From Utricularia gibba (lineage: Eukaryota; Plantae; Magnoliophyta), in NCBI GenBank assembly GCA_002189035.1, contig CM007991.1, positions 4,464,001 to 4,528,000 on the forward strand: a stretch of 64,000 nucleotides of DNA. Direction: 5' to 3'. The notes under the pieces are model-generated. The model did no database searches. It was not told the origin of the DNA and saw only the letters and a program-made list of their open reading frames with translations. Shown in pieces: positions 14,460 to 61,804 of the stretch (position 1 is its first letter; each line of letters opens with the position of its first letter). Made by a program: the position numbers and the translations under genes.

Positions 14460-14479
14460 TTGACTATATTAAAAAAATG

Positions 14480-33498: not shown

Positions 33499-33630
33499 AT
33501 TAATCATTTAATTTTTCCAATAGTATTAATTATATTTTTTAAATAATTAATATTGTAAACTATTTAATGTACATTAACAATAATTATTGTATTCAAAATA
33601 CATATATAGATATTTTTTATATATAATTAT

Positions 33631-34817
33631 TGATGGTAATTCTGCAAGTGTACAGAAACCGTCGAAGTAATAAAATAAGATCGTATCCACAAGGAATTGC
33701 TATTGGAATATTCTTTTCAAACAAAGATTCAAAAAACCGAAAACAAGAGAAATATTTGGTTTTGAAGAGAATAAGAAAAGTGGTCTTAGATCTAAAATCC
33801 ATCTTACTTGAAACTCGCCCTTGCATGTGTGCAAACCTTGAGAGCTGTCCTGCTTACGCAAGCTTTGGGGGTGTTATGCTAAAATAGTGCTACTCATTGA
33901 CTATTATAGCATCGTCCCTTGTTTTGTGGGATTATGGAATCAACCACGCCACCAGAGCCATTTCACCTCTTGTGATAACCCATGTTTTCCCCACACCCAA
34001 ATCTAACCCCTACACCTCTCATCTCGCAGATATATTAGACAGAATGTGCCTTACCAACGATGTCCGATTGAGCCCTTCTCCTTAGGTGCTTGAGACCAAC
34101 CTTTGATTCTCCCACACTCTATTAAGGCTATATGGTATTAAAGATCACGTTGATAAAGAAAACGTTGCGAAAAACAGAATCAGACCTCAAATTAAATGCT
34201 GAAAAACATAATAAGATAGTCACACGCGCATAACTTGCACAAGCAAGGCTTCACAACAGATCCTCAGCCGCAAGCGCTCACACGCACATGCTTGACTTTA
34301 AACAACAAAAGTTGATGAAAAACGAAGGGAAAGGAATCCAAAACATGCTAGACTCGACTCTAAACCCTAGATTGACTCTCTGGTCGTCCACCCTTCGATC
34401 TTTTAGGTCTTCGCGTTTGGATTTTTATATAATGGTGGGGATTTGTCAGGCTTTCTTGATGGGATCGCATCAAGTCTTCTATCCGAATCTTCTAAGATTT
34501 GATACAAATCTTCTAGGATGAGATCCAAATTTTCCAAGATAAGATGTGAATCTTATCTTATCCGAGAATCTTTGACCGAGTCTTCATTCGGATAGACCAA
34601 ATCTTTGCCTCCATCAAAGTAGCTCGAAAATCCCCCAAATTAAGTTAAAATTATCCTGAAAAATCACAAAACACACCTTCCCTCCAAAAAGATCAAAGTG
34701 GTATGAAAGATATAAAATTCTCTTAGAAACATAAGAAAAGTGGGATAAAAAGAATGCAAAACACATCTAAGTGAGTCTCAAAAAGCATAAATATAAGTGA
34801 AATAAAATCAATTATCA
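33631..34817 (-). mobile_element. Solo LTR, family D (Athila-like), 1187 bp
   Basis: TG...CA termini; TSD ATTAT/ACTAT (4/5); carries the gatcgtatccacaaggaa motif typical of Athila-type LTR ends. Confidence 0.85.
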
Positions 34818-34991
34818 ACTATCTTCTAATATTAAAAACTATTCAATTGAAATAAATACATTTTTTTAATTTTGTATTTGAAGTATCTATTTATTGTGTT
34901 GTAAATAGAAATTAATTATTTTTATTAGTTGAAGTATGGTATGCACAAAAAGTAAATTTATTTAATAAATACATACATAAAATATGATTAT

Positions 34992-35680
34992 TGATGATAA
35001 TTTTGCAAGTGTATAGAAATATTGAAGTAATAAATAAAGATCATCTCTATAAGAAATTGATTATTTCTGAATTTTCTAAAACAATTCAAAACAAACAACA
35101 GCAAAACGATTTTGAAAACAATAGAAATAAAAATTTTGGACAAGGATCCACTATACTAAAACTTGTCTATGTATGTATAAACTTTGAGAACTAATCTTAT
35201 TACACAAGTTATATGGTTATTATTTTAAAATAGTGTTATTTGATAACTGTTATAATATTGTATTTCATTTAATGAGAATATAAAATCAATTATACTATCA
35301 GAATCATTTAAATTTTTGTGATAACCCATATTTTCTTCACACTCAATTTTAACTCTTACACCTCACATTTTACAAATAGACTAAACAAAATGTGTCTTAT
35401 CAATGATGTCCTATTAAATCCTTATCTTTAATTGTTTGAAATAAATCCGAGATTTTTTTATTCACTCAGAGTTTTGTTATATTAAAGAGTATGTTGGTAA
35501 ATAAAATATTATGAAAAATAAAATTAAATATCAAATTAAATTGAAAGAATATGATAAAATAGTCACAAGTATGAGGATTTACACAAACAAGGCTTTAGCA
35601 TACATTCTTAGCCTCAATTACTTATATGCATATACTCGTTTCTAACATAAAAATAAACACTAGAATACAAAAAAAATGGT
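34992..35680 (-). mobile_element. Second, AT-decayed and truncated family D LTR
   Basis: Collinear with the copy starting at 33631 from the TG terminus; same left flank ATTAT; right end approximate. Confidence 0.75.
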
Positions 35681-38560: not shown

Positions 38561-39805
38561 GGAAGACATGTCCATCGCTTCCGTGTCCACTCACTTTGTG
38601 TTGTGATTTTTCACTCATTGCTTACCTCTATAAACACGTTTGGTGGTGGATCGAGAATGATGAAGATGAATAAAACATGAGAGTTTTGGATGCCTGAATG
38701 GTTCTTATTCATTGTTATTTCACTATCAGACAAGGAGGCGCAAGGTTGGTTGCCCGTTTGTCTGGAAGCAATTTTCCTCTAAGCGCGTACGCAAAAGTGG
38801 GCCACACGTTGCAGCCTTCTTTGTCCAACGTTTCCTTCCTGCCCTTGATTTTCGTCTTCTCTTGGGAATCTGGGCCCTTCTAATTAGTAAACGAAATACG
38901 AATCTACATGTTTACATATTCTTTTTATTATGCTTCTTTTAAGTGGGGCCCACTACTTTCTTTGTAAGAATTAAATAAGAATTGATATATTTTTAATTTT
39001 TTTTACAAAATAAGAAATTATAAAATGATTAATATTTGAAATTTTAAAAAATATGAATGTATTTTTTTAAATAAATATCATATTTACCCATATTTTGAAT
39101 AATAATATTTTATAAAAAATTATATTATATATTATTTTAGTAGTGTAAATAGATTTATATTAAATTTATAATTTTAATTTATGGTATTTTAATAACTTAT
39201 TCAAATAAAAGAAAAATATCACGAAACATTAGCATTCATTTTTACAACATAATAATTGTTGTGAATTATAAAAATAGAAGTAATTTTCTAAATTTATATC
39301 CAAAATCAATTCTTAAAAAAGTTACATTTTAATAGAAATAAAGTAATTTTCAAAAATCATTTTTGAAAGAAGAGAATTCAGTATATATTCAGAAAATAAT
39401 AACAATTAAACCAAAATTGATTATTTGAGAAGAAAATTGTGTGTAAATAATTTCTTTCTCTGCCGTCTCTCCTCAGTCACTCTTCCAATTGAGTCAACGG
39501 ACCCCACAGCAAAAAAGAGTTGCTTTCACGAGATGCCGTTGGCGTGGGGAATTTGGAATGAGGGATATCAATTTTTGAGTAATACAGGTGCCCGAAAGTA
39601 AAACATCCATGATCTTCTCCGCCAGTCATCGAAAGCAGACATAATTCCGCGGGTAACGCAATTCGCTTCTTCTTGATTCTCTCACATCGATCAATCCATC
39701 CTCTTTTAGAGGTACAGCTCCATTTTTTAGTGTTTTTGTATTTGGTTGTCAGTCGATTTTTCCGACAGCCGCTAGAGCAGAACTACGGAAAAAGATAGCG
39801 GAAAG

Positions 39806-42800
39806 ATGGATGTGGATGCGCTGTTGTCATTGGGGCGGTTCAGGGCTTCTGTGAATTCATTTCTGTCGGAATACGAGCCGATCGTGTTGATACTGGTCCC
39901 GATATTCGCACTTTTTTCTGCGCGAATTGTTCATTCGATCATTGTCGCTTGCTCAGAGAGAGGGCCAATATCTGCTGTTTTGGAGGTCTGCATGTCTATC
40001 GCCAAGTACGATTCTCTATGTAGACTTTATCTACTCGACGTTGACCGCAATTGTCGCACTGATCCGTCGATTTGCTTGTGAAATATGCTTTAAGGCGGAT
40101 ACCTGGTGTACACGAGTACATTGATGCCCAGAAGCAAAAGGTGCGATCACATAGATTAGCGATGCGCTTTTGTTCGTTCCATGACTCTCCTACCATCCGT
40201 GAAGTTGTAGACTGAAAAGAGAGTTGGAGACATTGACATTGCCACCATCATCACATGTGTGCTTTATATTTAACACGCTGCACCACATGTTTCTTATTGA
40301 AATGCCACCAAATTTCTTGTTTTAAATATTGCACCTGGATCATGACCTCCTATGCCTCCAGGTCATAAACCAATTGCAGGGTGAAGGTAAATCAAAAAGA
40401 GAGGGTTGGATGACTGATTTGCAAAGCACAGGATTAGGAGTTCAGGTCATAAACAGAATGAAAGATGAGAAAATGAAGGATGCTGCATGGCAGGGCAGAT
40501 GTTCGGGTACAGTGTATGTTTCTTTTTAGTAAATGTTGATACACGTCTATTTCGGATACCTCCCATTTTGCAAGCAACTTTTCTACGTATTTTTTTTAAT
40601 GTAGGCCTGATGCAACAATTTCTTTCTGTTTACAGCTACATTGCAGGCAAGGAACACGAAGGCCACTTTTCGTTGATAAATGAGGCTTGCTCCATGTTAG
40701 TGTCATCTTTCCTGAAGTTCCTTTTTATTTTTAATTTTGACGAGCTCTTAGGAAAATTTTCCCCAAGAAATAAGGGAGATGGAACGGGTTTTACCTATGC
40801 TTGAGTTGTATGGACATAGATGTAGCAGATGATTTCTTATCTTTTGATTGGTATAGTTAGGTACTAGTGGCTTTGGTTCTATCTGTTAGTGTTTTTTCTA
40901 GACATTTCGGTGGCTTTTGGTGCTATTTTACACTACGGCTTCATGACTACTGTATTCTGGCTATAAGCCATTCTCGAATGGTTGAGATCTTGAAATCTTC
41001 ATTTTTGGCAGTTCTCATACACTGTTCCTTCATTCATTTTGGAAATCTTTTTTCAGGTTTGCCCATACTAATCCTCTGCATTTAGATGTTTTCCCGAGTG
41101 TTGTAAGATTTGAAGCTGAAGTTGTGGCAATGACAGCTTCACTTCTAGGAAGTAAGGAAAAAATTTCTGGAGGACAAATTTGTGGCAATATGACATCTGG
41201 TGGAACTGAAAGCATATTGATGGCTGTGAAAGCCTCACGTGAATACATGAGAGCTAGAAAGGGGATAACCAGGCCAGAAATGTTAGTAGTTTCTCTTCCT
41301 CTACTTTTTTCATCTTCGTAAATGTTACATAACTGGTTCAGGTACATAAGAACAGGATCATACCGGTCTCAGCTCATTCGGCATATGACAAGGCGGCACA
41401 CTATTTTAATGTCAAGTTGTGGCGGGTTCCAGTGGGACAAGATTTTCGAGCTGACATTAAACAAATTAAAAAGTACATCAACAAGAACACCATAATGGTT
41501 AGGCTTTTATGCACGTTTGCTGGATATCCTGTTTATATGATTTTTCTAATGAAATATGTGTTGGTTATTCCGCCTAATTTTTTTGAAGTTACCCTAACAT
41601 CGACCCTTTTACAGATTGTTGGATCTGCACCAGGCTTCCCGCATGGAATTATTGATCCAATTGAGGTATACAGCTCTGATTCACTATTTCATTTCTTCTG
41701 TTGCTAGCTCAGCTTGGATTGTGTAAGTCATGCTATTATTATTCTACATGTAGGAACTTGGCGCATTAGCTGCTACATTTGGGATTTGTTTGCATGTTGA
41801 TCTCTGCCTTGGTGGCTTTGTATTGCCCTTTGCTCGCATGCTTGGGTATGCCCTTCGTGATATGTTCCCTGTCGCCACATTTTTCTTGGAAGATATCCTT
41901 TTGCATGGTTTGTTTTTTAATCTGTGGCTACTGCTGCATGTACAAGATTTTTCTGTCATTCCGATTTTCTAAGACATAAATTTAGTGATGTCAGGATACT
42001 TGCAACAGTATAATTCGATTTTTCTCTCAAGATTATTTTTTTCACATCTTGTGTAGGTATCCTGTGCCACAATGTGATTTTACGATTCCAGGTGTTACAT
42101 CTGTGTCTGTGGATGTTCACAAGTATGGACTGGCTCCTAAAGGAACGAGTGTTGTCCTATACAGGAACCATGAATTGCGAAAGGTAAGGCTAAGGCTTGT
42201 TATGTCTTCTTATTACCTTCCTGTCAGAAAAGTTTATTGTGATACCTTTTGTCTAGGTTGGTTTCTATTATACTTAAAATAAATAAATGAATTTTTCATG
42301 GCCATAGGACCATCTGATGCATGCACATGGCCGTTAACATGGTAGAATAAGATGTGCTGTCTCAAATGTGCATGCAGCTCTTAGTGGAGTTCATAAATGA
42401 GCTCATTGCAACACAATATTCACTACTTATTCACCGACTCATGTATTTTTTTTATTTATTGACCACTCTGGAATCGCTCGGTAAAATGGATGGTATGCAG
42501 CACCAATTTGTTGCTGGTGAGTTCCAACTCCTGATGGAATCGAACATGCCTTCTGATATAGCCATGCAATCAGTGATTCCTTTTCACTTTGCTTGTGCAT
42601 TCAGTAACTGAGTGGACTGGTGGACTGTATGTATCACCAACCGTTGCTGGAAGCAGACCTGGAAGTCTTATTGCAGGGGCTTGGGCATCGATGATGTCTC
42701 TTGGGCTAGAAGGTGACTATTTTTTAGCCTCCCTTTTATTTATTTATATTTTTCTATATCAAATGATCTCTCTGTCGTTTTGATAACAGGCTATCTGGAG

Positions 42801-43461
42801 AACACAAGACAGGTGATGGAAGTTTCAAGGAAGATAGAAAGGGGGTATTTGCTAAATTAACCTCAAGTTTTGTTCCATTTTTTCACCTGGGGCCAATTCG
42901 TCCTTTTGATCTCTTTGTAGAATTCGTGAGATTCCAGAGCTTTTCATCATCGGAAAGCCTGACATGACAATTGTTGCTTTTGGGTCTGATTTGGTGGACA
43001 TATTCGAAGTAAATGACATTATGTCTTCAAAAAGCTGGCACTTGAACGCATTGCAGAGGCCAAACAGGTAACATCGGCTATAAAAATCCTATGGACACAA
43101 TCAAGGATATTAGTTAGCTGATTTCTTGATGGAACTTTTTTCCCACCTCGTGTTCCCGTTTTCTCAGCATTCACATCTGCGTGACACTGCAACATGTTCC
43201 TGTCGCTGATGAATTTCTGAGAGACTTGGAAGACTCTGTCCAGGCTGTGAGTGCATGATGCCTTACTTTCTTTCCTCTTGTGAGTGCATGTTCATCCTTC
43301 GAGATGTTCCAATTTGATGAATCTCACTGGCCTCTTAGGTTAAGGCAAATCCAGGCCCAGTCAAGGGAGGGCTGGCTCCAATATATGGTGCTGCGGGGCG
43401 GATGCCGGACCGAGCTGCTGTTCAAGACTTGCTGGTTGATTTCATGGATGGTTCATGCTAA
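39806..43461 (+). CDS. DPL1: Sphingosine-1-phosphate (dihydrosphingosine phosphate) lyase, PLP-dependent, about 540 aa
   Basis: 15 GT-AG exons: 39806-40005, 40095-40140, 40362-40513, 40636-40695, 41057-41281, 41356-41497, 41615-41665, 41754-41845, 42057-42183, 42501-42516, 42605-42712, 42790-42844, 42921-43067, 43168-43246, 43339-43461 (1623 nt, in frame); motifs [27 protein letters not shown] (PLP Lys), AGSRPG. Confidence 0.97.
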
Positions 43462-44329
43462 ATAATCCTGCGTGCTGCTGGATCGATCATCCCCAAATTC
43501 TTAACGATGTGGATTCCCATGGAAACATTCCGACCCTTTAGAGGATGATGTACTCCCTCGCGAGGGCATGCTCAAAGAGATTAGATGGTCGACGCCTACC
43601 TCCACTTTCATCGATATCACCAAAAAGCCTTTTAGTTCGGTTGGCTGCGTGAGATTTTAGCACGCATTCCGAATCCACGAATGCGAGTTAAGTTAAATAT
43701 CCCCATAATATCCGTTCCTCGCTAGCCCCATTCGTTGTGGCACTTAACCACCCACGTCCCGGGACCATTTTGGAACTTCCGCCGCCGGCTCCTCCACTAC
43801 CTTTGCCGCAACACATGCATGAACACGCTCTTCATTTTCCGGCGGCGATTCAGCCCAGCATCATCGCTGCCCTCCGGCTCGTCATCTTTCCCAGAAGCCT
43901 CATTCTCCCTGCTGGCATTTCTAAGCGTCTCCTTGATACTACTCAGATGGTCCTCGAGTGCTTCAATGGCATGACCAACTTAATGTTAAAGTATTTTTGT
44001 TATAACATTAATAACAATTTTGTGATTAATTGTATTTTAATTATAACTGATTTAATGAATTGATATTTAACGATATTTATATTTTTTGAATTGATTTTAT
44101 TCAAATTATTCTAAATACAAAAAAATACAAAAAATTTTACTCAAAGAGCATTATTTTATGTTTTACATTTCAATTATACCTTAATATATTGGCCAAACTA
44201 CTTATTATATTTATTAATTTCAATTTAATAATTTGATCATAGGAACAAAATCATCACATATTCAAACTTTGATCACATATAATGTTTTTGAAATTTTTTG
44301 AATTTTTTTACTTCAATTGCCTTCGAGGC

Positions 44330-44760: not shown

Positions 44761-44991
44761 GAGAATTTATAGAGAAACTATGATATGTTTGCATAACAAA
44801 AGAATAATTAATCATATTTTTAAAAAATAAACATAGTGATAAATGTTACCTATTGAGCATGGGAGTATGAAAATCTTACACTCTACTACAACCCACAACT
44901 ACATGTTTGATGCGAGATGTTGGTGAGGTGAACCTTGTTTTAATGACAAATGTCATCACCATCTCTCTGCTATACTCAACCATAATACTAT

Positions 44992-45386
44992 TGTTGTAGT
45001 CGAAAATCGGTATCCAGGAGGAGGCCGATTTTTGGGTTATGGGTGTGGCCGGACGCGTCGTACCCAGTTGTGGTTTTGATATTATATTTGGTTCGGTTAA
45101 CAGAAATGAAGATGGACAGGGATTTTTTACGTGGAAATGGAGAACGGAAAAAACCACGGAGTTTGTCGGAGCTCGCCGGAAAATATCTTCACTAAAGGGA
45201 GGTGGGGGAAAAATACAAGTTGGAGAACTTAGAGTCGAATCCCTTCTTCTTCAGGATTTCTATTATTTATAGGTGTGGTTGATCTAGCTGAATTCTGAAT
45301 TCTGTAGGTGTTAGCTGCTTTCTGCACCTGTCGTACATACTATGGTTCTATTTTTATGTAACTGCTGACTGCTCTGTCATTGTCGT
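44992..45386 (-). mobile_element. 3' part of a split family B solo LTR
   Basis: Ends ...CTACAACA followed by ATAGT in element orientation; interrupted by the family A LTR at 45387. Confidence 0.88.
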
Positions 45387-46622
45387 TGATAAACAGAAAA
45401 TTCAGCATATTGTTGCAATAAAAGCAAACTTCCGTATCAAATACATTTATAAGCCATAATCTACACAAAATACAAATTTAGAAAACTTGTATAGTGGATG
45501 TCGGGGTCGATCGCAAGGAGCTTGTGCTTGTCATGTATTTTAACAGATGCAGAATTCAAAGTAACGGTAAGTCTTAGTCTAAGCTCGAACCAACAGTGGC
45601 AAATAAGTTCGTTAAACAAGATCAGTAAACAATATAAGGTCTTAACACTACGGTAACAGGTACTGGTTCTAACTCAGAATAATACTAAGGTGACTTAAGG
45701 GTGTGCAGGTGATATGGTGCCAAAATCCCTAATTTAATCTACCATGTTCCTACACTCACAATTTCAAATAACCTAAGTCTACCTAGGTCATTCATCATAT
45801 TTTCAGTTAAGCTAGTCTCTCATATCATCACCAACGTTGCAATTAGATCTACCCGCATGCAAAGCATATAGAACTAGGTCTACCTGGTTCTACTGGTTCT
45901 ACCTCGGACTAACACCTACTACTCACGTCTTGATTTGTTGGTCTACCTCTAAATCAAGAATCTAAGTTGTAAAGCTACTTGTTCCCCTCCTTAAATCTAT
46001 CCATGGCTTGATAGAAATAAGAGCTAAGAAACAATGATGAATTTTATTAAGATTCCTAGACCTACACTACCATGCTTCATCTTAAGACACCTCTAGGGCT
46101 TTAACTACTCATATTTGGAAGGTAAAAAATAATGACATTAACGTAAAACAACGAAAATGTTAAGGACATCGTGCAGAAGTTGGGTGCAAAAGCCAAAAAA
46201 CATCAACAAACTAAAATAAAGCAGTAAAAGTTCTGGTTTCCCCTTTTGCGACTGTTCCTAGGCCGGAACAGTAGCGTTGAACTGGGTCTTGATCTTCTTC
46301 CTTCGTGCTGGAGGTTCTTCTCCAGAAAAATCGCCTTCCTTTCTCCTTCTCCTTCAGTATTCTTCGTGTTCGAGTTGGGGGAGAAACCCCCTCGTGTGTG
46401 TTCTGAAAAATTCTGGTTCCCCCTTTTGCGACTCTCTCTCCTCCCACTACCAAGGCAAGTACATTCTCTGACAAATCTACTATTTCTAGTCCTGACTTGC
46501 AGACTGCCGTCGTGATAGTGTACTCATTGCCCCCTGCAGCCTGGTGACTTGCACGAAATCAAGATTTTTACTTGATTCTTGGGTTACTGCTAGACTCCAA
46601 AATCGGGTTAGACATGGGGTGA
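45387..46622 (-). mobile_element. 3' part of a family A LTR nested in family B
   Basis: Homologous to 49840-51234; 3' CA end followed by ACGAC; truncated just before the conserved 5' hairpin. Confidence 0.88.
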
Positions 46623-46912
46623 TGGTTGTAATCTACCAAACGAATCGGTGCCTATAAGTATCTTATGAATTCTCCTTTAGATATATGGATATTATCACAC
46701 AATGTGGTATAAGGTAATCATCATTATTATTACACCACATAGTAAATGCCATTATGTCTTAACGAATAGGTAAGGGATCATAACAACAATCCATATTGTT
46801 AATAAATGGAGTGTTTTGTGAAACTTGACGGCTTGCTCCAACTACAATTGCGAAGGTTCATACTTCACCTTCATTGTTTTTGAATAGTTCGAAAGTTGGT
46901 TTTTGAATATTT

Positions 46913-47138
46913 CGCGCGCGCCCTCACGGCACGCCCAAGGGCAGCTGCGCGCTCCCGGTGCTGGCCTGCGGGCTCCCCATTCGACCCGTCTTGAAACACG
47001 GACCGAGGAGTCTGACATGCGTGCGAGTCAACGGGCGAGTAAACCCGTGAGGCACAAGGAAGCTGACTGGCGCGATCCCCCCCCCTCGACGGGGTGGGTG
47101 CAACGCCGACCGACCTCGATCTTCTGAGAAGGGTTCGA

Positions 47139-47182
<44 letters not shown>

Positions 47183-47275
47183 AGCAGGGCGAAGCCAGAG
47201 GAAACTCTGGTGGAGGCCCGCAGTGATACTGACGTGCAAATCGTTCGTCTGACTTGGGTATAGGGGCGAAAGAGT

Positions 47276-47331
<56 letters not shown>

Positions 47332-47385
47332 TCGATGCGCGAGTTCTATCGGGTAAAGCCAATGATTAGAGGCATCGGGGGCGCA
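46913..47385 (+). rRNA. 26S (LSU) rDNA fragment, 473 bp, orphan pseudogene
   Basis: Conserved ACCCGTCTTGAAACACGGACC, GACCCGAAAGATGGTGAACTATGCC, CGAAGTTTCCCTCAGGATAGC; abrupt ends in AT-rich DNA; no TSD seen. Confidence 0.97.
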
Positions 47386-47467
47386 CCAAAATTTCATTCA
47401 GAGAAAAATGATAGCACTTGGTTAGTGAAAAACCAGTGTAGCATAAATAAACTAATCAAGTTTTTAC

Positions 47468-47878
47468 CTGCAAGAGAAGAATAACTAGAAGGTACCTCCT
47501 GCAGATGAACATTTTGGATTTTGGATGATTTCTCGTCTAGTGATGATAATGCTGAATTGCTAGGTTGATTTCTGTTCATAGAAGAAAATGGAACGGTTGA
47601 TTCAGCTGAGCGAGAGTGTTGAGAAGCCTGAAGCTGGCCTTCGCTCATCTCCGTTTGTGGTCATGTTGGATGTTGTTGTTAGTTCGATGGTGGACCTACC
47701 GGCTTGTGCATTTCAGAATGTTGAGGATCATGGGGCTGAGAATAATGGTCTCCCTGGTTATTCTGATCTTGATTTCCCCCAGAAGGTAGCAAATGTGAAA
47801 AAGGGGGCTGACTCTCTGCAGTTGCTGCAGCAGCCCAAGATCTTGCTTTTGCTTCCCAGTCTTCCACATTATTGTTCG
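47468..47878 (-). pseudogene. PNISR-like gene, exon 2 (inverted block)
   Basis: AG/GT-bounded 411-nt exon: NNNVEDWEAKARSWAAA...VHLQEVPSSYSSLAG with in-frame TAA and TGA. Family identity rests on my recollection of plant homologues. Confidence 0.72.
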
Positions 47879-48128
47879 CTGTACGCAAAGAAAAATTAAG
47901 AAAGCAGTGACATGTGAAAGAAGAAACACCTCGTGCATATATTGAACAGAGTAAGTTTTTGGGTGCCAGAAAATTAGACATCAAGTTGTGGGAGGGAAAA
48001 AAACAAGCATATAATGAAAATGTGCATTAAAAACAAGTTCCGCAAAAAATAAAAAACTAGGAAAAAATAAGGTGTACAACTTAAATATAATTTCAAACTC
48101 TCATGAGAATATAAAATTACAAACTAAC

Positions 48129-48260
48129 TTGTGTTTTGTGGATGACTCCATCTTGCAGTCCCCGAATCCTACACGACCCAGTGTACAAAAATATGGAGAA
48201 GGTGCAGAATACCGTAAGGCAGCAAAAATCCATCTTCAGCGTACATCATCACCCAAATGA
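48129..48260 (-). pseudogene. Probable 3' end of exon 1 of the same pseudogene
   Basis: *DSGTARWSHPQNT followed by donor gttagt in a phase compatible with the next exon; weak similarity. Confidence 0.35.
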
Positions 48261-48396
48261 TGATCTAACTCTAACTTGAAAGATGTTCTATTATCTCATT
48301 AATACTTTTTGTTTTATGGAGGTTTTCTTAATATAACTTTTTTACTATAAAATGGTGGCACAATTTTTTGCATCATGGATCAAAAAATTTCATAGT

Positions 48397-48547
48397 TGAT
48401 GGGGTATAAATCGGACCCAGTTAGTCGTCTACTGAAAAGTAGACAAAAGGTGCTTTGACGGGATAACGCAGGCCGACATACCGATACCCATCAATATCTA
48501 TCAACAACAACCGTTTTGCACAATTTGAAAAGTAGCCGAATTACGGC
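48397..48547 (+). mobile_element. 5' part of the split family B solo LTR
   Basis: TGATGGGGTATAAATCGG... preceded by ATAGT (48392-48396) and ending in ACGGC. Confidence 0.88.
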
Positions 48548-48677
48548 TGATAGCATACAAATTTTCATGTTTTAGGATATGAAAAATTATAAATTTGTAA
48601 TTATGTTTAAGTGTTAATTTTATAGTTTTAAGTATTTTTATTTGGTTAGGGAAAGTATGATTTTTGGTGTATTAGTA
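48548..48677 (+). mobile_element. 5' 130 bp of the split family A LTR
   Basis: TGATAGCATACAAATTTTC... aligns to the family A start TGATAACACACGAATTTTC; stops where the hairpin should begin. Confidence 0.8.
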
Positions 48678-48979
48678 GATTGGTGCGTAAATAGGTGCAG
48701 GCGCAGGTGCAGGTTACCAGGAAAAATATGAACCTATACGCAAACTAGGATCTGATACAATCATACTTGTACCATGATTGAAACGAGGCGAGAAATTCAA
48801 GGGTTGATTGCTCAGCTCTACCACAGAATCTGCTTGACCACCTAGTATTTGTGGGTTCTCCACCCACCCAGGTCCGCCATTGGCAAACTGCTGATACTGA
48901 GTGTCATGATGCGTATGAGAAGAAACTGGCATAGAGGAAGAGCCATTGATCAGTTTTCCCTCACCTGTCTCTCACGTTC
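48678..48979 (-). pseudogene. PNISR-like gene, exon 3 (inverted, truncated)
   Basis: Acceptor ttttatttcag; ELSNQPLNFSPRFNH...SW*PAPAPAPIYAPI, comparable to DQPLDFAPRF...SWTPP...VYPPI in homologues as I recall them. Confidence 0.65.
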
Positions 48980-49839
48980 CTGAAATAAAAATACAGACTC
49001 AGGATTCCTCTCCCAATCCCATCAGGGTTATTTTTTTTTTTCTCAGTATAAAACTGATTTTGTTTTTTTGGTGTTGGAAGTATGCTCAAAAACCATGTAA
49101 TCTAGCATCCCATAATTGTTGTTCTCTCTTTTACGGCAATGTCCAGAATTATATGTTTGGATAATGTATTTATAAGTTGTTAAAAATATTCGACAGATTC
49201 TCTTATAATATGTATATTCGAATGGTTCACAGTTTGAATACTTTGATTGGGCATCATAGTTGGATTAATTGTCACATTTGTTTATTTACTGTGTTGATAA
49301 AGTGTTTATCAAGATACAGTAGGCAGTGGGTCGAATGCTGCTTGATATGAGATGTTAGAATAAACATGTGGGGGCTCATGAGATGAGCTGACCGAACATG
49401 TGACGCTGAATAACATATGCATGGTATTTTACATATGTCAACACAATGTTATTCAGATTGCTTTATGCAAATCCTTCGACTTGAGGTTTCATTGTGTCTT
49501 ATATATTATTGCCTTAGATTTGTTACTATTTAGACTTGTTGAAATATACAAGTCAGCGATAGTGATGGTCTAAATTGATAGTATATGAAGATCTCTGAAT
49601 AACTAAGATAGGATTCATTACTTCGGGTAAACGGAGATGAGACTTCAGATTTCCTGATTGTTTCGTCGGGTAAATTCCTGGCCAGGTTGTCGAGATATTG
49701 GAATGAGATTCCAAATTTTCGTTTTGCCATCGAAACGTGAGTTCAGGATAATCTTGATGATCTAGATGAAATGGAATTTGACTATCCATGATTCCATTCT
49801 AGATCGAAGTCTCCAATGAAGGGATATTCATAAGGATAG

Positions 49840-51234
49840 TGATAACACACGAATTTTCCTATTATTAGAGTAAGAAAATTATACTTTTGAATCATGTTTT
49901 AAGTGTTTATCTTATAGTTTTTAGTATTTTCACCAAATTTTAGTACATAATGTGATTTTATGTGTTAATGGGCTAAATCAAAAGATTTAGCCCATCGCAT
50001 GTTATTAACATTTTTCTAATCCAGCAGCAAAGCTCTAAAATTAGGGAGGATACATGAATTTCGTGCATGTGGAGATTTGGAAGAAGGGGCACAAGACATA
50101 AGAAGGAGACATGATTAATATTCAGACGCCTACAGTCTGCAGGTTCAGGCCAGGAACAGTACGAATGTCAGAAACAGTGGATTGATTTTGAAAAATGGAA
50201 AAAATATGTGAAGATATTTTTGGAGAGAAGAGAAGAAAGAGAGGAGAGCAGACCCAAGGAGGGGCTTCTCCCCCAACACGACGAGTACTGAACCAGGAGA
50301 GGAGAAGAAGATCTTCATCCTCAAGAACAGCATAAGAGCCCAGTCCAGCGCTACTGTTCCGGCTAGGGAACAGTAGCAGACGTAAATCAAAACTCTTATT
50401 GCTTTATTTTCGTTTATTGATGTTTTCAGTTTCTACAACCAACTCTTTCACGATATTCTTGACATTTTCGTTGCTTTATGTTAATGTTATCATGTTTTAC
50501 CTTCAAAGCATGAGTAGCTAAACCCTAGGAGTGACTTGAGGTGAAGCATGATGGTGGGGGTCTAAGAATCTTAATAAAATTTACCATTCTTCCTTAGTTC
50601 TTGTTTCTATCAAACCATGAGTAGACCTAAGAAGGGGAACCAGTAGTTTCACAACTTAGATGCTTGATTTAGAGGTAGACCAATAAATCAAGACGTGAGC
50701 AATAGGTGTTAGTCCGGGGTGGAACCAATAGAACCGGGTAGACCTAGTTCTATATGCTTTGCATGCGAGTAGACCTAATTGCAATGTTGGTGACGATATG
50801 GAGGACTAGCTTAGTCGAAAACATGGTGAATGATCTGGGTAGACTTAGGTTATTTGAAGTTGTGAATGTGGGAACATGGTAAATTAAATTAGGGATTTTG
50901 ACACTACACCACCTGCAGACCCTTAAGACACCTTAGTATTATTCTAAGTTAGAACCAGTACCTGTTACCTTAGCGTTAAGACCTAATATTGTTTACTTAT
51001 CTTGTTTATCGAACTTGTTTACCACTGTTGGTCCGAGCTTAGACTAAGACTTCCTGTTATCTCGAATTATGCATTTACTAAAACACTTAGCAAGCACAAG
51101 CTCTTCGTGATCGACCCCGACATCCACTATACAAGTTTTCCAAATTTGTATTTTGTGTAGATTAGGGATTATAAATTTATTTGATACGGATTTTCTATTT
51201 TTATTGCAACGATATTAGGAATTTCCGTTTATCA
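49840..51234 (+). mobile_element. Solo LTR, family A (Athila-like), 1395 bp
   Basis: TGATAAC...TTTATCA; perfect TSD GATAG (49835-49839, 51235-51239); 12-bp-arm hairpin at 49968-49995. Confidence 0.93.
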
Positions 51235-51499: not shown

Positions 51500-51915
51500 T
51501 TGGTTAAATATTGATTATATGGGCTCAGGCCCATATAACCAAGGCCCAAAATAATATGGGCCAATGATATGGGCCACAAGTCCTAGGCCCATATTCCTAA
51601 GGTCCAAGCCCATATTTATTAGCCCGTTTTGGAAAGCTTGCCGCATTAAAATGCATGCCATCGCTTGGCTATAAATAGGAGGCAATTGGTCCACTTTCAT
51701 AGGTTTTTGGATTTCTTCTGGGAAGAGGTGTTCAACCTCCGAAAGAGGAAAATCACTTTAGGAAGAAACGAGACCGGTGAATAGCAATACGAAGAAGAGA
51801 ACTCGACTCTGGTTTCGAGTTTGGTAATTTCCTCCACTTATTCCACGTGTTTCTTCTATGTTGATAGTCAGTGTTAATATGAGATATTAGAATTGACTTT
51901 ACTGTGTTTTCCCAA
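51500..51915 (+). mobile_element. Probable Copia-type LTR remnant or promoter
   Basis: Cluster of TGGGCY/GGCCCA motifs, ctataaatag TATA, ends ttttcccaata; no TSD. Confidence 0.4.
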
Positions 51916-52222: not shown

Positions 52223-53023
52223 GGTGATCCAATAATGGTTCCTCCACCTTCTGGACCTTCAGCTCCAATTTTTCCTGCAGGACCTGGCTTCCAGTCAGCT
52301 TTACCAATGATAGGTTTCACGCTTGGTGCTGCCTCTTCTGTTCTGCCACATCTTACATCTTTTTCGGGTGATGCATATGGCGTTTCCGAGAGACCAAAAA
52401 AAGTTAGTTATGAATTATTTCCAGGTTTGAATCTGTTCAAATCCTTAATGCTAAAACATATGGTGTGACTGCGGGCTCCAGTGCCTAATTGGCTTAGGGA
52501 AGAAATTATTAAAAAGAAAGCAAGTCTTGCGACTTCTGCTCGAGATATTGACAAGATTGACTCGCCATCCCTTGAGGTCGATGGTGATGATGCATATTCT
52601 AGGAGTAGAGATCAAGCAGATAGCAAGAGCATCGATTCTTCAAGATCCGTTGAAGATGGGGATGATGAGGTGAATTCCCTCCATCCGTGTGACTAATTCT
52701 ATGTTCCCTTCGTACAACCTGTTGCAAATATCTGCTGTTCTTCTGTACTTTTGTTCAAGTTGACTGCTTGTTGGCGTTGCTGATTATGTGCTCATCACTA
52801 TTTGTTTTTTAGGTAGCAACGGAGGCCATTATGACGGCTGCTATGAGTAAGAAAATAAAACGCATTCTAACTGAAGTTCTTTTGAAGGTTGCACCTGCGT
52901 CAATGATAATCAACTATGAGTATTCTTGGAAATGCATTAACATTATTTTCAGGCAGTTCACAGACGAACTGTTTGAGGAAATAGCCTCTAAGGTTTTGGG
53001 AGAAGACGACATCTCCTCTGAAG
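52223..53023 (+). pseudogene. PNISR-like gene, exons 4-7 (+ strand), truncated
   Basis: Exons 52223-52402, 52475-52669 (acceptor mutated to GG), 52813-52887, 52957-53023: FSGDAYGVSERPKK/APVPNWLREEIIKKK...DQADSKSIDSSRS/KRILTEVLLK/FTDELFEEIASKVL. The LTEVLLKxTDE motif resembles PNISR LTEILLDVTDE. No downstream exons found. Confidence 0.78.
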
Positions 53024-56000
53024 GTTACTTAACAACACCCCCTCGTCGCCTGAAATTCTTGTTGACACGGTTTTAAACTTGTCAAGGGATGGTGTTGTCT
53101 AACATACTGAAAACGGTAAGTTCATTTTTTTACACTTTGTTTAGGTTAACTTATTCATTATTATATCCAAAATAAGGACTTCAATCATCTATTATTGCAC
53201 TTGTTGATGATAAAGATGAACAAAGTGAAGGCCGAAGTCTATGAAAATATTATTTAATAAATATTTTATTCTATCACTTTGGTGTTATTGTAATATTTTA
53301 TGGTTTTTTTAGTTAAAAATATGATTTTAATAAATAGTAAGTTTGAAATGCTAACCTTTTTGTATGTTGTAGAGAATAAAAATGGTAAAAAGTCAAATAA
53401 AAAATACACCTTTTGGGAGTTGAAAAAAGAAAATGTTAATTATTCTAGAAATTGTTACATGGGATGGATTTCCCATCGTGGAGTTGATACCCGTCATGAT
53501 AGGACATGATTTTTAAATTTTAAATTTATTATGGATTTGAAGTTTGAATTTGTGGATCAGACATATGTTTGGTGAAACCCTAATGTAATCCTACTTATTG
53601 ACATCCCGACTTGTACAATATTAATAATAAATACAATATAGATATATAACTCATATCTTTATGTCATTCAATCTTTTAAATAAAAGATATATCCTATGAT
53701 TCGTTTGAATCACAAGATCCACCGCAGTTGCATATTTGTGTTATATACTTTTTTTAAAAAAAAAATTGACACTACAATCGCATAAATATGATATGTGAAA
53801 GTTATTTTGAAAATCAAATTTGCAAATTTGGGGATGATCACCTAATTTCTTACAAAAAATTTGCAAACCATATTATACATTAATTAAATCTAAATTCAAA
53901 TAAGTTTAACTTGACTACAAAACAAACTTTTTGAAAATTTTTAAGTATCATTTATAGATGGCTAAATAATGTAAAGTTGCAATAACTCCCATCTATTAAG
54001 AGTTTTGATTTGAAATGTTGCACAACGCTCGTTTAGATAAGGTTTTGGTAAATTAGAAGCAATTTCATGAAAACTTACTTTATTGTTAAAGAAATTTTCT
54101 TTTTCTACATAAGATGAATTGAGAAAAGAGAACTATAGCAAAATATAAGAGGGTTACCCTAAACAACTTTTGAATTTCTTTATAAAAGTGAATCTCCTTA
54201 AAAAACAGATTTTCCTTCCAAAGCGAGCTAATACGTGATTTTTTAACTTGTCCCTAGTTCCTTTCAGTATGACTTGATTTTTCTTGTGTGTAATCCTTGT
54301 GAAGCAATTGGGCCATTCATTATATGATACGTTTGTTGGGCAGTGGAGTTTATATGCCCATTTATTGTTTTTTGGTTGCATATAAGTATCATGTGTGAAA
54401 AAGAAAAGGGAGTTTACCTTACAAAAGGTGACCTCTTGTGTTCCTCTCCGATGGGTGGTCGACCTCACATGCTTAGTGAAGGTTTCTCTTCTTGGATCAT
54501 GTTCTTCGTCTCATGCTAAGGAACTGGCGATAAGAACAATGTTAATTAAATTTTAATAAATTGGTTTTGAGTGGTGGTAACATTTCTTTGATCCATGAGA
54601 CAAGATCAAAGGGTTTATTGTCATAGGATGTGGCTTACAATATTTTATTGTTTGTAAAAATCTACTTAATTAATTCATTTCTAACATTTGTTTGTTGATC
54701 GTGTTGTAGACTTTGAGTTTCGATAGTACTCGTGAGATAAACTATGAACAAACGTGAGTGACCACAGGTTGGAAGGAAGCGCAGATTGGAGATTCAAATC
54801 GGAACCCAAGGAGCAATTTCGAGAAAGGAAAAACAACACTTTTAGTGTTCTTGTTACAGTGTTTTATATGTCGTGTGTGCAAGGATAAATTCGTAAATTC
54901 CTATATAGTGGCATAACGTGTCTCTAATAATTAACCTCCAGGATCCTCTTGATCGCTTTTTTCATCCAATAATCTTAACAAACTACGTTAAGTTTTATAT
55001 CATTTTCTTTTCTTTTTTTATGCAAACCTGTTTTAGGAATATTGCGTAGCTTTAATTGTCTTTATCTGGTACAACAAGTGAGGGACATATTGTATGCGGT
55101 ATATGCTTCTTGATCAACGTGCCTCCTGTATTTTTCTTATTGTGAGTTACTTACTCTACTAGAATCGCTGTTCAAATGGATGAAAATCATTCGAAAAGTT
55201 TCTCCACCAACTATTAAATCATCTTCAAATGGTCTTTTATATACAAAACCACATTTATCTACAAATAGTGATTACTGGAATGTCACACTTCTTTCAATGA
55301 GATTTTCCTTTATATGATTATATTGTTTTGTATGAAAGTTTAGTTGATGATAATATGTTTAGTGCTTCTAGAATGTTATACAAATTCATGCTATTGAAAT
55401 GACTGCTATATGTTTAAATATTTTGAATTATGCTTTCACTCCACTTGGATTTAAGAAAGTTTTTGAATGAAAAACGGCTTTTGAAATATGAAAAAAAAAA
55501 TAGAGCTAATTTATAAACAGATAGAGTTTGAAAAAAAAAAAAACAAATGCAATATATTAATGCAGGAGTTTGTGACTTTTGATGTAGATGAAATTATTTT
55601 TAAATTTTAAGAAAGATTTACTCTTTTTTTTTCAAATTGTTCTGATCTCTATCAAATGACAAATATTTACAAATTTTGAAAATATTTGGATGATTCTTGG
55701 ATTGGTAGAATAACAACTCTGTCGAAATCTATCAAAGAGACTAGATAGCGTCTTGAACCAAACTATTCAGTGATTCTAACATGGTTCACACCTTAGATTG
55801 ACTCAATGAGTTCAAGTAACATCTCTAACCAACCTCCACAATGAATCTAATATGGCTCACACACCAATTGAACCAAAGCAATGCCTCTTACCAAACTTCT
55901 TCGTGAATCCAGTGTGGTTAATCTCAAATATTAAGGAAAACTCTCCTTTTAAGAGGCCCTCCTCATCAAACATTAGAAAAACAAAACCCCTTCATGGAGT

Positions 56001-57543
56001 CTTTTTTTTTTTTTTTTTTTTTACTACCTCTTTGTAGGGCTCCCAAATTTATCTCTAGGATGATCTCCTCATAAGGTTCCCAAATTTTTACCTAGGGTAA
56101 AGGCATAGATAATTTTAGGGATAACCTCCTCATTAGGCTTCCAAATTCATTATATATATATAAATAATGCTATGACATACATATCTATTTCATGAAATAA
56201 GTTTTATCTTTTTTTTATAATGCAGATTAATTTTTTCTATTTATTTGTAAGTTTGTCATAACCTTATTCAATTATTAAAAAATTTATAAAAAAATTAAAA
56301 TTCCAATAACATATATTGTGAGAAAATAGATGTAGAAGTCAGCTATATCGATCATTAAGGCACAATTCAACTAGACAATACAAGCTTTAAAACATGTGAT
56401 ACCTAATGATTTTTTTACATAAAAAACATTGATCTTTATCATTGGTCACATGTTTTTTTTGACATATTTTCTAAATTTGCATTATTGACCAACAACAATT
56501 AAGAATCATTAAATATCACATTTAAAGGAAGAGCGCCACTTGGAATTGATCAAGATGTTAAATAAAATCAATGATGTACTTTTATCTTATTTGTTAATTA
56601 ACCGAAAGAAACAAAAAAGTGGATATGCCCTACAATTTAATAATATTGTGAGGAAGGTAGAAATGGTTTTTTGGATGATTGTGATAGAAGAAATTACAGA
56701 TAGATGTACATAAAAAAGAAATTGATAATGAAACTTACAACATACCAATGTGATTACCATGATTGTGATAAAGAAAATTACATTTAATGTTTTGTTTCTT
56801 TATATTAATATAAAATCATAATATTTTGAAAATTTTGAATTGATGGAATATCCCTTGCAAACACGTATGTCAACCCTTTCTTCATCAATTTGAAGTACTT
56901 TTCGACTATACTAGATAATACGACATGAAAGAGAAATCCAAAAAAAATACATAATAGAGATATTTTTCACTTGTCAAGCAAACAACATTAACTGAAAGTT
57001 GATGATTTTTCAATGTTGTCTCCTATTTGAATATGATGTATACTTGACGTCCATCAAAGAACCAACTTAAAAAGAAACATGTTATATCTGTAGTGTGCAA
57101 AAATTGCAATAAAATTGATCATGACAACAGGACATTCTAGACTATTTAATGTGGAGGCCTTTGAAAATGCACAAAATCAAGAACCGACTATTACAACAAC
57201 ACATGACTTAATAGCAATATGATTAAATTTTCCAAGTAGCCGAAGTGCTGGTGAAAGTTTAATAGCGTCACTTTAATAATTTGAATTTTAAATTTTCATC
57301 ATGAAAATATTCATATAAATACTATTTATAATATAAAAAATTCAAAAAAAAATAGCAATACTTCATTTAATTTCGAATTTTAACAAAATAAAGTTTTAAT
57401 ATATTTATATGTAAAAGTGAATCTAATGCTACTTTGTACATTTGTTACATTTTAAATTTAAGGTATGATTAAAAAAAATCCAATGTTACTTATCAAGTCA
57501 TTGTTTCTTTTAATCAATTTATACTACTTTAGTTATTTGTATT

Positions 57544-58854
57544 TGTTAAGTATCATTTTTAGTTAATTATTAGGTATTATTATGTGTTAATTTTGTATGA
57601 AGTCGTCCAAATTAGGAGTCTTATTATTAAGTATTTGATTTTTACTAGAAAATTCCTATTTTCCCATTTTGTGTATATTTTATGGCTTTTTTTCTCACAC
57701 TTTGACCGAGACATGTCATGAGATTGTCATAGAGTGTTGCAAGAGTATTGCAGGTGATCAGACTCTGAGTTTTCGTGCCTTGTACGCGAGTTGGAATGAT
57801 TGTGGGCGGAAGACTTACACTAGTCAAGGCGTTTGACTTACGGCATGTCAGAATTTGCGCAATGATTATGCGCAAACTTGCACCCAAAGAAAGTTTGGTG
57901 GCGCACACAAGACAGAAGGAATGATGGGAAGGGAACCCAAAGGAGTTAATACACGTGAGAAGTCATATAAAAACCACTTGGAGCACTTAGTTTTGGACTT
58001 TTGTCATTTCCTTTCTAGACTTAGAACTTTTAGGTTCTTCCTGCCTTCCAAGGAGGAAGAATACTTAGCTTTCAATTTCCTTTCTGTTTTCATGACCCTT
58101 TCGGACTAAAAACCTTGAGTTTCTGGGAAGTAGATGAAGTTTCCTTCCAAGTCTTGAGCAATACACTCGGTTCTTCGCTGAATTGATTTCGAATTTTGCA
58201 TACTTCCACGCGCTTTGTTGCAATATTTCTGTAACGACTCCTAGTCAAGGTCCATGAGTAGCAGGCCACTTCTCGCAGATTTTGGTGAAGATCAAGGTGA
58301 AGAGCACCAACTCCAACCCTGCTGGTTCGAGGGAAGTAGTGGATTGTTTGTGGCCTAGGTACCACAACAGTGGATAGGTTGTGACCTCGGACCTACCACT
58401 GGCTATTGGCAACAACTGGGCACACGCGCGCAATTCGGTTTTGAAGGCAATCGAAGTCAATCCTCTTGTCTTCCTAATCGTCCAAGGGGGAATCATATGA
58501 GGCTATTACTATGCCTCCTTGTCAATCAGAGTGTAAGGGAAAGTAGGCTATTCCTTGCTCCTATAACTAGCTATTCGAAAGAAATCAGTGAAAACCGAGG
58601 CAAGGACGGACAAAGGAAGGAGATGGAATCTTATTCCCAGGAACTGCGTACCGTAGTCAAGGTCCATTATTTAGGTTGCAATTTTTATTTCTGCATCTTA
58701 CAAACCCTCTTTTACAAAACCGTGGCATTTTGTAGAAGTTCTTTACAAAACGCTTTTCACGAAAAACAACTCCCTGAGATCGATACTCGTAGTACGCTTT
58801 CTAGTGTTTTACGTTTTAAATATTTAAAATTTTTTGAGAAAACGACACGCAATA
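57544..58854 (+). mobile_element. Solo LTR, family C, 1311 bp
   Basis: TGTTAAG...CGCAATA (terminal CA mutated to TA); perfect TSD GTATT (57539-57543, 58855-58859). Confidence 0.9.
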
Positions 58855-59013
58855 GTATTGGTCCAAATCTATAAAACTAAATACTCTCCATATATACTTT
58901 TTTGTGATTTTATCTCACAAATCTTTCTCATACATTATTTTGAATTCAATGTCTTTCTAAGAGTTTTGATGTCTAAAGTTGTTTTAGCCGTACGAGTTTT
59001 CTATGATGGTAAT

Positions 59014-60360
59014 TGATAAACGGAAATTCCTAGTGTCGTTGCAAAAATAGAAAATTCATTATCAAATAAATTTATAATCCCTAATCCTCACAAAATACAA
59101 ATTAAACACAAAGTGTACTGTGGAATTTGGGGTCGATCACAAGGAGCTTGTACTTGTCATGTATTTCAGCAGATGCAGAGTTCAATGTAATGATAGTCTT
59201 AGTTTAAGCTCAGACCAACAGTGGTAAACAAGTTCGGTAAACAAGATCAGTAAACAATTATCAGGTCTTAACGCTAAGGTAACAGGTGCTAGTTTTCACT
59301 TAGAATAATACTAAGGTGCCTTAAAGATCTACAGGTGGTGTGATGCCAAAATTCCTAATTTAATTTACCATGTTCCTACACTCACAACTTCAAATATCCT
59401 AAGTCTACCCAAGTCATTCATCACATTTTCGGCTAAGCTAGTCCACTATATCATCACCAACCTTGCAATTAGGTCTACCCGCATGCAAAACATATAGGAC
59501 TAGGTCTACCCGGTTTTACTGGTTCTACCCCGAACTAACACCTACTGCTCCCGTCTTGATTTGTTGGTCTACCTCTAAATCAAACATCTAAATTGTGAAG
59601 CTACTTGTTTCCCTCCTTAGGTCTATCCATGGTTTGATAGAAACAAGAGCTAAGAAAACAATGGTCAATTTTATTAAGACTTCTAGACCCACACCACCCT
59701 GCTTCACCTTAAGGCACTCCTAAGGTTTAGATACTCATGCTTTGAAGGTAAAATGGAATAGCGTTAACATAAAACAACGAAAATGTTGAGGACATCGTGC
59801 AGAAGTTGATTGTAGAAGCTAAAAACATAAACAAACGAAAATAAAGCAGTAAAGTTTCTTGATTACGTCTGCCACTGTTCACAGGCCGGAACAGTGGCAC
59901 TGAACTGGGTCTTGATCTTCTTCCTTCAAGCTAGAGGTTCTTCTCCAGAAAAATCTCTTTTCTTCCTCCTTCTCCTTCTATCTCTTCGTGTTCAAGTTTG
60001 GTTGGGGGAGAAACCCCTCGTGTGTGTTCTCTCAAAATTCTGGGTCGTCCCTTCTTTTTTTTGCGACTCTCTCTCCTCATCTTTCTCTTGCCTCCCACTG
60101 CCCAAGGCAAGTACATTCTCTGACAGATCTGCTGCTCTAGGCCCTCACTTGCAGACTGTCGCCATGACAGTGTACTCATTGCCCCCTGCGCCCTAGTGAC
60201 TTGCACGAAATCCAGATTTTTCCTTGATTATTGGGTTGCTGCTAGACTCCAAAATCGAGTTAGACATGGGGTGAGCTAAATCCTTTGATTTAGCCCACTA
60301 ATTACACTAAAATAAGGATATGTTTTTTTATAACATATACAATATTATTTATATACATCA
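59014..60360 (-). mobile_element. Family A LTR, third copy
   Basis: 3' end well defined; hairpin retained near 60271-60298; 5' end uncertain and TSD not matched. Confidence 0.8.
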
Positions 60361-61473: not shown

Positions 61474-61692
61474 TGTTGGGTTTGGGTTGTTGGGCTTTTT
61501 ATATGTATTTTTATTCATTGTGGCTCATTGTTGGGTAACCTAGGTATTGGGTATATGTATACCCTACTAGGAACTCGTATGTTTTAGGTTTTCGATCATT
61601 CTTATTGTTCATGAGTCGTTTTTCATCCAAGGTGATCTCATAAGAATTATCCCTTTGTTCCTTCCCAAGACTCTATCTTTCTTCCATCAACA
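61474..61692 (+). mobile_element. 5' LTR of a Ty1/Copia element (219 bp)
   Basis: TGTTGGG...CATCAACA immediately followed by a PBS. Confidence 0.8.
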
Positions 61693-61704
61693 TGGTATCA
61701 TAGC
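61693..61704 (+). other. Primer-binding site (tRNA-iMet)
   Basis: TGGTATCATAGC, one mismatch to the canonical TGGTATCAGAGC. Confidence 0.85.
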
Positions 61705-61804
61705 AATAAGGTTCTCAAACCTGTGTTCGTTTCAGTATTTTATTTACCGTTCAGCCTTTTTCACTTAGTGGTTTTCCAAGTATCAACCCGAAGCTTGTCA
61801 AACA

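Follow-up and report, generated by a model that had tools for sequence, protein, structure and literature searches.

The window analysed here is a stretch of 64,000 nucleotides of contig CM007991.1 from the Utricularia gibba assembly GCA_002189035.1 (positions 4,464,001 to 4,528,000, forward strand). This AT-rich sequence (34% GC) is free of N and represents nuclear DNA, in which spliced plant genes occur alongside remnants of long terminal repeat (LTR) elements. The locus of interest, from about 45 to 53 kb, holds the two separated halves of a family A solo LTR nested within a family B solo LTR, which lie on opposite strands, together with the relic of a gene for a cyclin-related/PNISR-like protein, in which exons 2 and 3 lie on the minus strand with their left-to-right order kept and exons 4-7 lie on the plus strand. 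An earlier note on this DNA had deduced from the LTR halves that a single block, 46623-48677, is inverted. The exons provide an independent check of this proposal and reveal a second, adjoining flipped segment. Our best reading, which we regard as likely, is that the locus carries a double-flip repair scar, not a functional device, left when three breaks were rejoined by end-joining (coordinates in Table 1).

Family copies and repeats were identified by self-BLAST of the window, and the B pieces were aligned with the intact copies B1 and B2 using MAFFT. B can be recognised as a solo-LTR family of ~0.54 kb with TG...CA ends because B1 and B2 carry their own target-site duplications (TSDs); the family begins with TGATGG and finishes with ACAACA, the TG...CA ends being present in all copies. 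Family A is ~1.37 kb long, and all its copies, which are mutually 76-82% alike, start with TGATA(G/A)C and end with TTTATCA. We found no gag-pol element with A or B LTRs in the window and, as no full-length A or B element sets polarity or superfamily, the labels 5' and 3' are nominal. The window's only retrotransposon coding sequence, a copia-type gag (Retrotran_gag_2, E-value 1e-24) with the start of pol at 61805-63158 (+), is flanked by neither family. The third A copy, A3, is divergent over its first ~100 nt and may have arisen through recombination or rearrangement of its own.

The two LTR pieces are halves of one nested element. By self-BLAST, positions 1-151 of B1 correspond to 48397-48547 (+) and positions 151-531 to 45376-44992 (-), and when 48397-48547 is joined to the reverse complement of 44992-45386 the product aligns end to end with both intact B copies, the additional bases at the join being just the duplicated 5 nt and a 6-nt indel adjoining the TSD relative to the other copies. 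For family A, 45387-46622 (-) matches A2 and A3 at 83-85% by BLAST and 78-85% in global alignment, and 48548-48638 (+) corresponds to the first 91 nt of A2 (~80%) with a local score of 88, compared with maxima of 48 over 500 shuffles and 28 for genomic controls; the final ~40 nt of this 130-nt piece are weakly conserved. At the site where A inserted, the intact B copies read ACGGC and ACAGC. The arrangement described in the earlier note, with the 3' part of B and most of A at 44992-46622 (-) and the 5' part of B and A 1-130 at 48397-48677 (+), is thus borne out by self-BLAST and alignments, and both TSD matches that it had reported, ATAGT in five of five positions for B and ACGGC/ACGAC in four of five for A, can be read from the sequence. 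Because the halves are exactly complementary in both families, a chance pairing of the pieces is excluded. The in-silico re-inversion that it had proposed as a check gives elements that align end to end with the intact copies of the window, minus ~21 nt of A.

The gene provides a second marker. An exhaustive protein search with the plus-strand open reading frame (ORF) 52469-52693 found homologues of about 900-1030 aa, named at source 'cyclin-related' or 'arginine/serine-rich protein PNISR' (Striga hermonthica CAA0833717.1; Spatholobus PNISR), the nearest named relatives being from Striga and Genlisea. These homologues reach 20-25 bits against the Pfam family PNISR (PF15996), under its cut-off of 27, and Pfam searches with the single exons gave nothing significant; word-index protein searches with the ORFs of exons 2 and 3, confined to the length window of the tool, likewise returned no match. 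A profile built from 27 full-length homologues and compared with all six-frame pieces of the window matched seven pieces (E-values 1.6e-24 to 4e-6) and nothing else in the window. In the Striga hermonthica orthologue the corresponding pieces are the consecutive exons 2, 3, 4, 5 and 6/7 on one strand, and at the DNA level Striga aligns with the window at exons 2 and 3 alone, in both cases solely in the minus orientation. When exons 2 and 3 are un-flipped and concatenated with exon 4 (X at stops), they form one uninterrupted domain covering profile positions 126-471 with 164-175 bits. The inversion of the block 46623-48677 is therefore seen twice, in the LTR halves and, independently, in the minus strand of exon 2 versus the plus strand of exons 4-7. 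Strand composition agrees over two flipped intron parts of this segment, 47883-48391 and 47389-47459, where the plus strand is A-rich and the strand scores are negative (-9.6 and -19.9, respectively). The segment holds, besides the rest of exon 2's surroundings (a portion of intron 2 and the 3' portion of the intron or region lying upstream), a ribosomal RNA (rRNA) fragment, exon 2 itself, one B TSD and the 5' parts of B and A.

Exon 3 does not fit a single inverted block. Its frame (...SYFSW*PAPAPAPIYAPI) parallels Striga ...SNYAWPSSTVPGGAYPLL and reaches base 48678 exactly, where breakpoint b lies. Since this breakpoint cuts exon 3 and exon 3 lies on the minus strand outside the block originally proposed, a second, adjoining segment must be flipped; re-inverting 46623-48677 does rebuild a single B containing a single A, as the earlier note had stated, but leaves exon 3 antisense to exons 2 and 4-7. 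Exon 3 still lies to the right of exon 2, whereas a single larger inversion would place it to the left. In addition to exon 3, the second segment contains a minus-strand acceptor and polypyrimidine tract at 48980-49003. To place its right end we used the U-richness of the intron sense strand and a 3-mer forward/reverse log-odds classifier trained on the plus-strand genic sequence of the window. The strand score is negative to near zero from 48678 to ~49000, all windows in 49000-49839 score +4 to +16, and both AT skew and the 3-mer score switch at about 49000, which suggests a third breakpoint at about 49003-49019. A perfect 6-bp inverted repeat bounds this segment (GATTGG at 48678-83, CCAATC at 49013-18); it was noticed post hoc, has a chance expectation of about 1-2% and is only suggestive.

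An arrangement at odds with any inversion was also considered, namely that the exons at 48.8 kb and 47.7 kb follow one another in a gene on the minus strand whose intron holds the LTR piece. The splice phases are compatible, and the idea fails on protein order, in which exon 2 (47.7 kb) comes before exon 3 (48.8 kb).

The rRNA fragment of the first segment, a piece of the large subunit (LSU) gene, lies in ancestral intron 2, far from any ribosomal DNA context, and is antisense to the gene after un-flipping. It scores 264 bits with Rfam RF02543 over 47012-47297, was extended by alignment and corresponds to about 610-1000 of the Rfam model. Neither this fragment nor the gene had been noticed in the earlier note. 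The fragment may have entered earlier as filler DNA, or it may belong to the event that caused the flips.

Table 1. Features of the rearranged locus and of the LTR copies used for comparison, by position in the window (HMM, hidden Markov model; for junctions, the slash in the sequence marks the join)
Feature	Position	Strand	Evidence or remark
B1, intact family B solo LTR	13928-14460	+	TSD TTGGC/TTGAC; self-BLAST, alignment
B2, intact family B solo LTR	28545-29035	+	TSD TAGTC/TAGTC
B TSD copy 1, ACTAT on plus strand (ATAGT on minus)	44987-44991	-	read from sequence
Split B, 3' part (about positions 152-541)	44992-45381	-	BLAST to B1 14079-14459, 74% (74.4%)
A TSD copy 2, ACGAC on element strand (one G>A change)	45382-45386	-	4/5 match
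Split A, positions about 151-1366, ends ...TATCA on element strand	45387-46622	-	matches A2, A3
Junction a	46622/46623		LTR A interior joined to far end of ancestral intron 2 (GGGGTGA/TGGTTGT)
Flipped segment 1, 2055 bp	46623-48677	-	LTR halves, exon 2 strand, strand composition
Nuclear LSU (25S-type) rRNA fragment, about 0.48 kb, little decayed	46906-47388	+	Rfam RF02543
Profile 213-275	47460-47633	-	profile hit
Exon 2 (profile 125-275)	~47468-47878	-	HMM i-E-values 5e-14, 3.5e-6; tblastn; Striga exon 2 DNA 88%
Profile 125-191	47685-47882	-	profile hit
B TSD copy 2, ATAGT	48392-48396	+	5/5 match to copy 1
Split B, 5' part (positions 1-151, starts TGATGG)	48397-48547	+	BLAST to B1 13929-14079, 73.5%
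A TSD copy 1, ACGGC, last 5 nt of the 5' part of B	48543-48547	+	read from sequence
Split A, first about 130 nt, starts TGATAGC	48548-48677	+	local alignment to A2
Junction b	48677/48678		A position ~130 joined to codon boundary inside exon 3 (TTAGTA/GATTGG)
Flipped segment 2, about 0.33 kb, right end approximate	48678 to ~49003-49019	-	exon 3 orientation, strand composition
Exon 3 (profile 285-~395)	48678-48979	-	exon-3 HMM 5.4e-10; Striga DNA match
Profile 285-348	48768-48947	-	profile hit, i-E-value 5.6e-7
A2, intact solo LTR in ancestral intron 3, outside the rearrangement	49840-51234	+	perfect TSD GATAG/GATAG
Exons 4-7	52223-52408, 52475-52669, 52819-52890, 52960-53022	+	HMM E-values 2e-11 to 1.6e-24; tblastn
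Profile 406-471	52232-52408	+	profile hit
Profile 470-534	52475-52669	+	profile hit
Profile 538-561	52819-52890	+	profile hit
Profile 562-582	52960-53022	+	profile hit
A3, third family A copy	59014-60420	-	TSD not matching (ACATA vs ATTAC)

Breakpoints near base level, as the earlier note had announced, could be placed for junctions a and b; the join within A is less clean than it had assumed. The end of the 130-nt A piece (...TTTTGGTGTATTAGTA) aligns with ...TTTTAGTGTAATTAGTG of A3, which next reads GGCTAAATCAAAGGATTTAGC and then TCACCCCATG, and the reverse complement of 46622 and the preceding bases opens at the same TCACCCCATG. Relative to A2 and A3, about 21 nt of A (GGCTAAATCAAAGGATTTAGC in A3) are thus absent between 48677 and the reverse complement of 46622, and therefore the join inside A is not seamless. 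The stretch 48995-49017 faintly resembles the lost 21 nt, in the wrong orientation, and we put this down to chance. Neither microhomology of more than 1-2 nt nor filler was found at junctions a and b; no inverted repeats of at least 14 nt were found at the junctions, and segment 1 also has no short terminal inverted repeat.

From these data the ancestral plus-strand order would have been left flank, B[A] nest (-), upstream intron, exon 2, intron 2, exon 3, intron 3 and exons 4-7, with A2 entering intron 3 earlier or later. If the ancestral segments are called P, Q, R and S, the present order would be P, Q', R', S, with Q the reverse complement of 46623-48677 and R that of 48678-~49010, so that three ancestral joins have been broken and three new ones made. 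Break 1 would have occurred inside LTR A at about position 130-150, break 2 some 25-40 bp upstream of exon 3, within intron 2, and break 3 inside exon 3, about 8-10 codons short of its end; the last ~8-10 codons of exon 3 are indeed missing. The fragments of 2.06 kb and ~0.33 kb would then each have been religated inverted in their original order, probably by end-joining with little or no microhomology and with small losses that include the ~21 nt of LTR A. This could have happened either in one three-break event or in two inversions reusing breakpoint b within 0-6 bp. Two successive inversions would serve equally well; the shared position at b may tip the balance slightly towards one event.

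The order of the earlier steps is partly fixed. Because the A TSD consists of B sequence, it is certain that B inserted before A, as the earlier note had stated, and the break came after the A insertion. Its further step, that the solo LTRs formed before the inversion, does not follow: a truncated LTR and its partner LTR, still direct on the left side, could have recombined after the break to give the same end state.

Several points weigh against the three-break reconstruction. Between the rRNA fragment and junction a, the 283 bp of 46623-46905 have an ambiguous strand score of +2.5, and we found no intron matches to Striga that could orient them. The third breakpoint is placed by soft composition signals. 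A candidate for the missing tail of exon 3 at 49004-49027 (+), with the peptide IPLPIPSG, adds 11 bits, but almost any 8-residue filler adds ~10 bits; its rank in a control scan was 1007th of 3798, and we do not count it as evidence. As exon 1 was not located, how the left flank is oriented with respect to the gene is indicated by the B TSD alone. A breakpoint shared by two flips would be unusual if these were independent events. Finally, ORFs across junctions a and c, the latter at the right end of segment 2, have no record in the public contig collection; the only contig found for the same species (Logan, run SRR2033663), which shows that public reads of it exist, covers 52354-53601, where it is 99.9% identical and collinear.

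A more specific reading is a single germline micro-shattering, a natural kilobase-scale, chromothripsis-like event with at least three simultaneous breaks in 2.4 kb, in which both fragments were flipped and the rRNA fragment was taken up as filler. We consider this scenario unlikely. If true, the uptake of the rRNA fragment would call for a fourth break, in intron 2, and might account for the ambiguous strand score at 46623-46905.

The assembly could also be at fault, with contigs of 2.06 kb and 0.33 kb mis-oriented during scaffolding or gap closing and the true genome collinear. Small contigs are sometimes mis-oriented during assembly, and trimming of contig ends could account for the few bases lost at the joins (~21 nt of A and the tail of exon 3). 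Against this, there is no N in the window, an inverted repeat of just 6 bp, as bounds segment 2, is too short for a k-mer assembly to be misled by it, and the four stops in exons 2-3 are consistent with a long-dead, truly disrupted gene. As the sequence around two of the three junctions (a and c) is unique, an assembler should not confuse A copies that have diverged so far, and the gene is long decayed, we rate a misassembly as improbable.

We think it very unlikely that exons 2-3 were captured by a Pack-MULE- or Helitron-like mobile element, or are a filler copy, with the LTR pieces moved by a separate cut and reinsertion. The LSU rRNA between the pieces indicates that non-local DNA entered the interval, and the gene lacks exon 1 and exon 8 onward, both of which would suit such an origin. 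However, the profile search found no plus-strand copy of exons 2-3 upstream of exon 4, the two exons keep their splice-site contexts, intron spacing and order, the segments are not bounded by terminal inverted or other repeats, and LTR A is broken at exactly the base where exon 3 is cut.

A simple two-break inversion of 46623-48677 is the reading of the earlier note; everything to the right of 48677 would then be in its ancestral orientation. In its favour, the LTR halves need only two breaks and re-inverting the block places exon 2 on the strand of exons 4-7. It is nevertheless hardly credible, since exon 3 lies outside the block yet on the minus strand in the profile order exon 2, 3, 4, breakpoint b falls within exon 3, a larger single inversion would reverse the order of exons 2 and 3, and the exon-3 match, with an i-E-value of 5.4e-10 and a Striga DNA match, is not spurious. 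The chance that the LTR pieces stem from different insertions with fortuitous TSD matches is negligible: the A TSD matches at just four of five positions and the last 40 nt of the 5' A piece align poorly, but B 1-151 is complementary to 152-end and A 1-130 to ~151-end, both nested boundaries coincide, the B TSD is perfect and the B halves are alike in their divergence from the references.

Ectopic homologous recombination between inverted copies of LTRs or other transposable elements yields inversions, and inverted A copies do occur close by, the nest being on the minus strand and A2 on the plus. Here, however, the breakpoints are not in homologous positions, since LTR A is joined to an intron at one junction and to exon 3 at the other, and A2, being full length with perfectly matching TSDs, excludes recombination between the inverted A copies. 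Multi-break rearrangements rejoined by non-homologous or microhomology-mediated end-joining are known as chromothripsis- or chromoplexy-like events and as radiation- or T-DNA-associated complex inversions in plants, and small end-joining inversions are a known kind. The double-flip scar resembles the multi-break class in that at least three breaks cluster, fragments are religated in random orientation, a few bases are lost where they join, microhomology is scarce and filler DNA may be present; it differs in its tiny scale (2.4 kb) and in involving two fragments only.

The approach is well established in plant genomics, one example being maize centromere 10, where rearrangements from double-strand break repair were reconstructed from fragmented and nested LTR retrotransposons and their TSDs, end-joining or microhomology repair was inferred and insertions of mitochondrial DNA were seen (PMC4806543). 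As in that study, partial elements, mismatched or separated 5-bp TSDs and nesting point to inversions, deletions and the order of events (PMC4806543); unlike the maize case, which extends over kb to Mb in a centromere, ours spans 2 kb of genic sequence, comprises two flips and can be checked against exon order. The scar is of an ordinary breakage-and-repair kind and calls for no new mechanism; what is unusual is the double flip with an internal, gene-based control. Two independent markers, a nested LTR with two TSD pairs and the order of exons in a gene, together date a small complex rearrangement and fix its limits almost to the base, and the second flip missed here illustrates that inference from transposon fragments alone can under-call rearrangements. 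On a practical matter, the two flips explain a broken gene model with exons 2-3 antisense to exons 4-7, and they add another natural case of clustered breaks and end-joining repair in a plant genic region.

Exons 2-7 match profile positions 125-582 of the cyclin-related/PNISR-like proteins, yet the copy in the window is a relic. Exon 2 has two in-frame stops (TAA, TGA) and exon 3 another two (TGA at the third codon, TAA in 'W*P'), while exons 4-7 have none. Exon 1 was not identifiable in the left flank; weak proline-rich hits at 43746-43871 (+) show no conserved motif, face a protein-like ORF on the opposite strand and are not claimed as this exon. Exon 8 onward (profile 583-1026) is absent from the window, including the remaining 53023-64000, and therefore the relic is truncated at its 3' end too; in Striga, exon 8 encodes about 370 aa and lies only about 160 bp past exon 7. 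What remains at the locus is a relic or a dead partial duplicate, and the flips may have killed the gene or may have followed its death.

Some further features lie close to the gene. At 43800-43979 (-), a 60-codon protein-like ORF (…EALEDHLSSIKETLRNASRENEASGKDDEPEGSDDAGLNRRRKMKSVFMHVLRQR*) in a GC-rich island has no Pfam match. A dense cluster of GGCCCA/TGGGCC motifs with some small palindromes (e.g. TTGATTATATGGGC/GCCCATATAACCAA) occupies 51511-51600, and the ATG at 52235 with which exon 4 opens follows about 0.65 kb downstream; we take these motifs to resemble plant 'site II' promoter elements. A multi-exon gene for a pyridoxal phosphate-dependent enzyme (about 39800-43500, +), which has a weak match to Pfam Pyridoxal_deC and is presumably a sphingosine-1-phosphate lyase, ends shortly before the rearranged locus.

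Elsewhere in the window, an inverted pair of 1.3-kb sequences with 88% identity lies at 1730-3059 (+) and 57540-58867 (-), the second copy adjoining A3, and has weaker relatives at 6990-7393. An ORF with an SBP (SQUAMOSA promoter-binding protein) domain is found at 23760-24413 (-) and one with a hAT transposase dimerisation domain at 30416-30979 (+). Furthermore, 33621-34273, 34982-35617 and 26994-27441 are diverged direct repeats with 68-70% identity.

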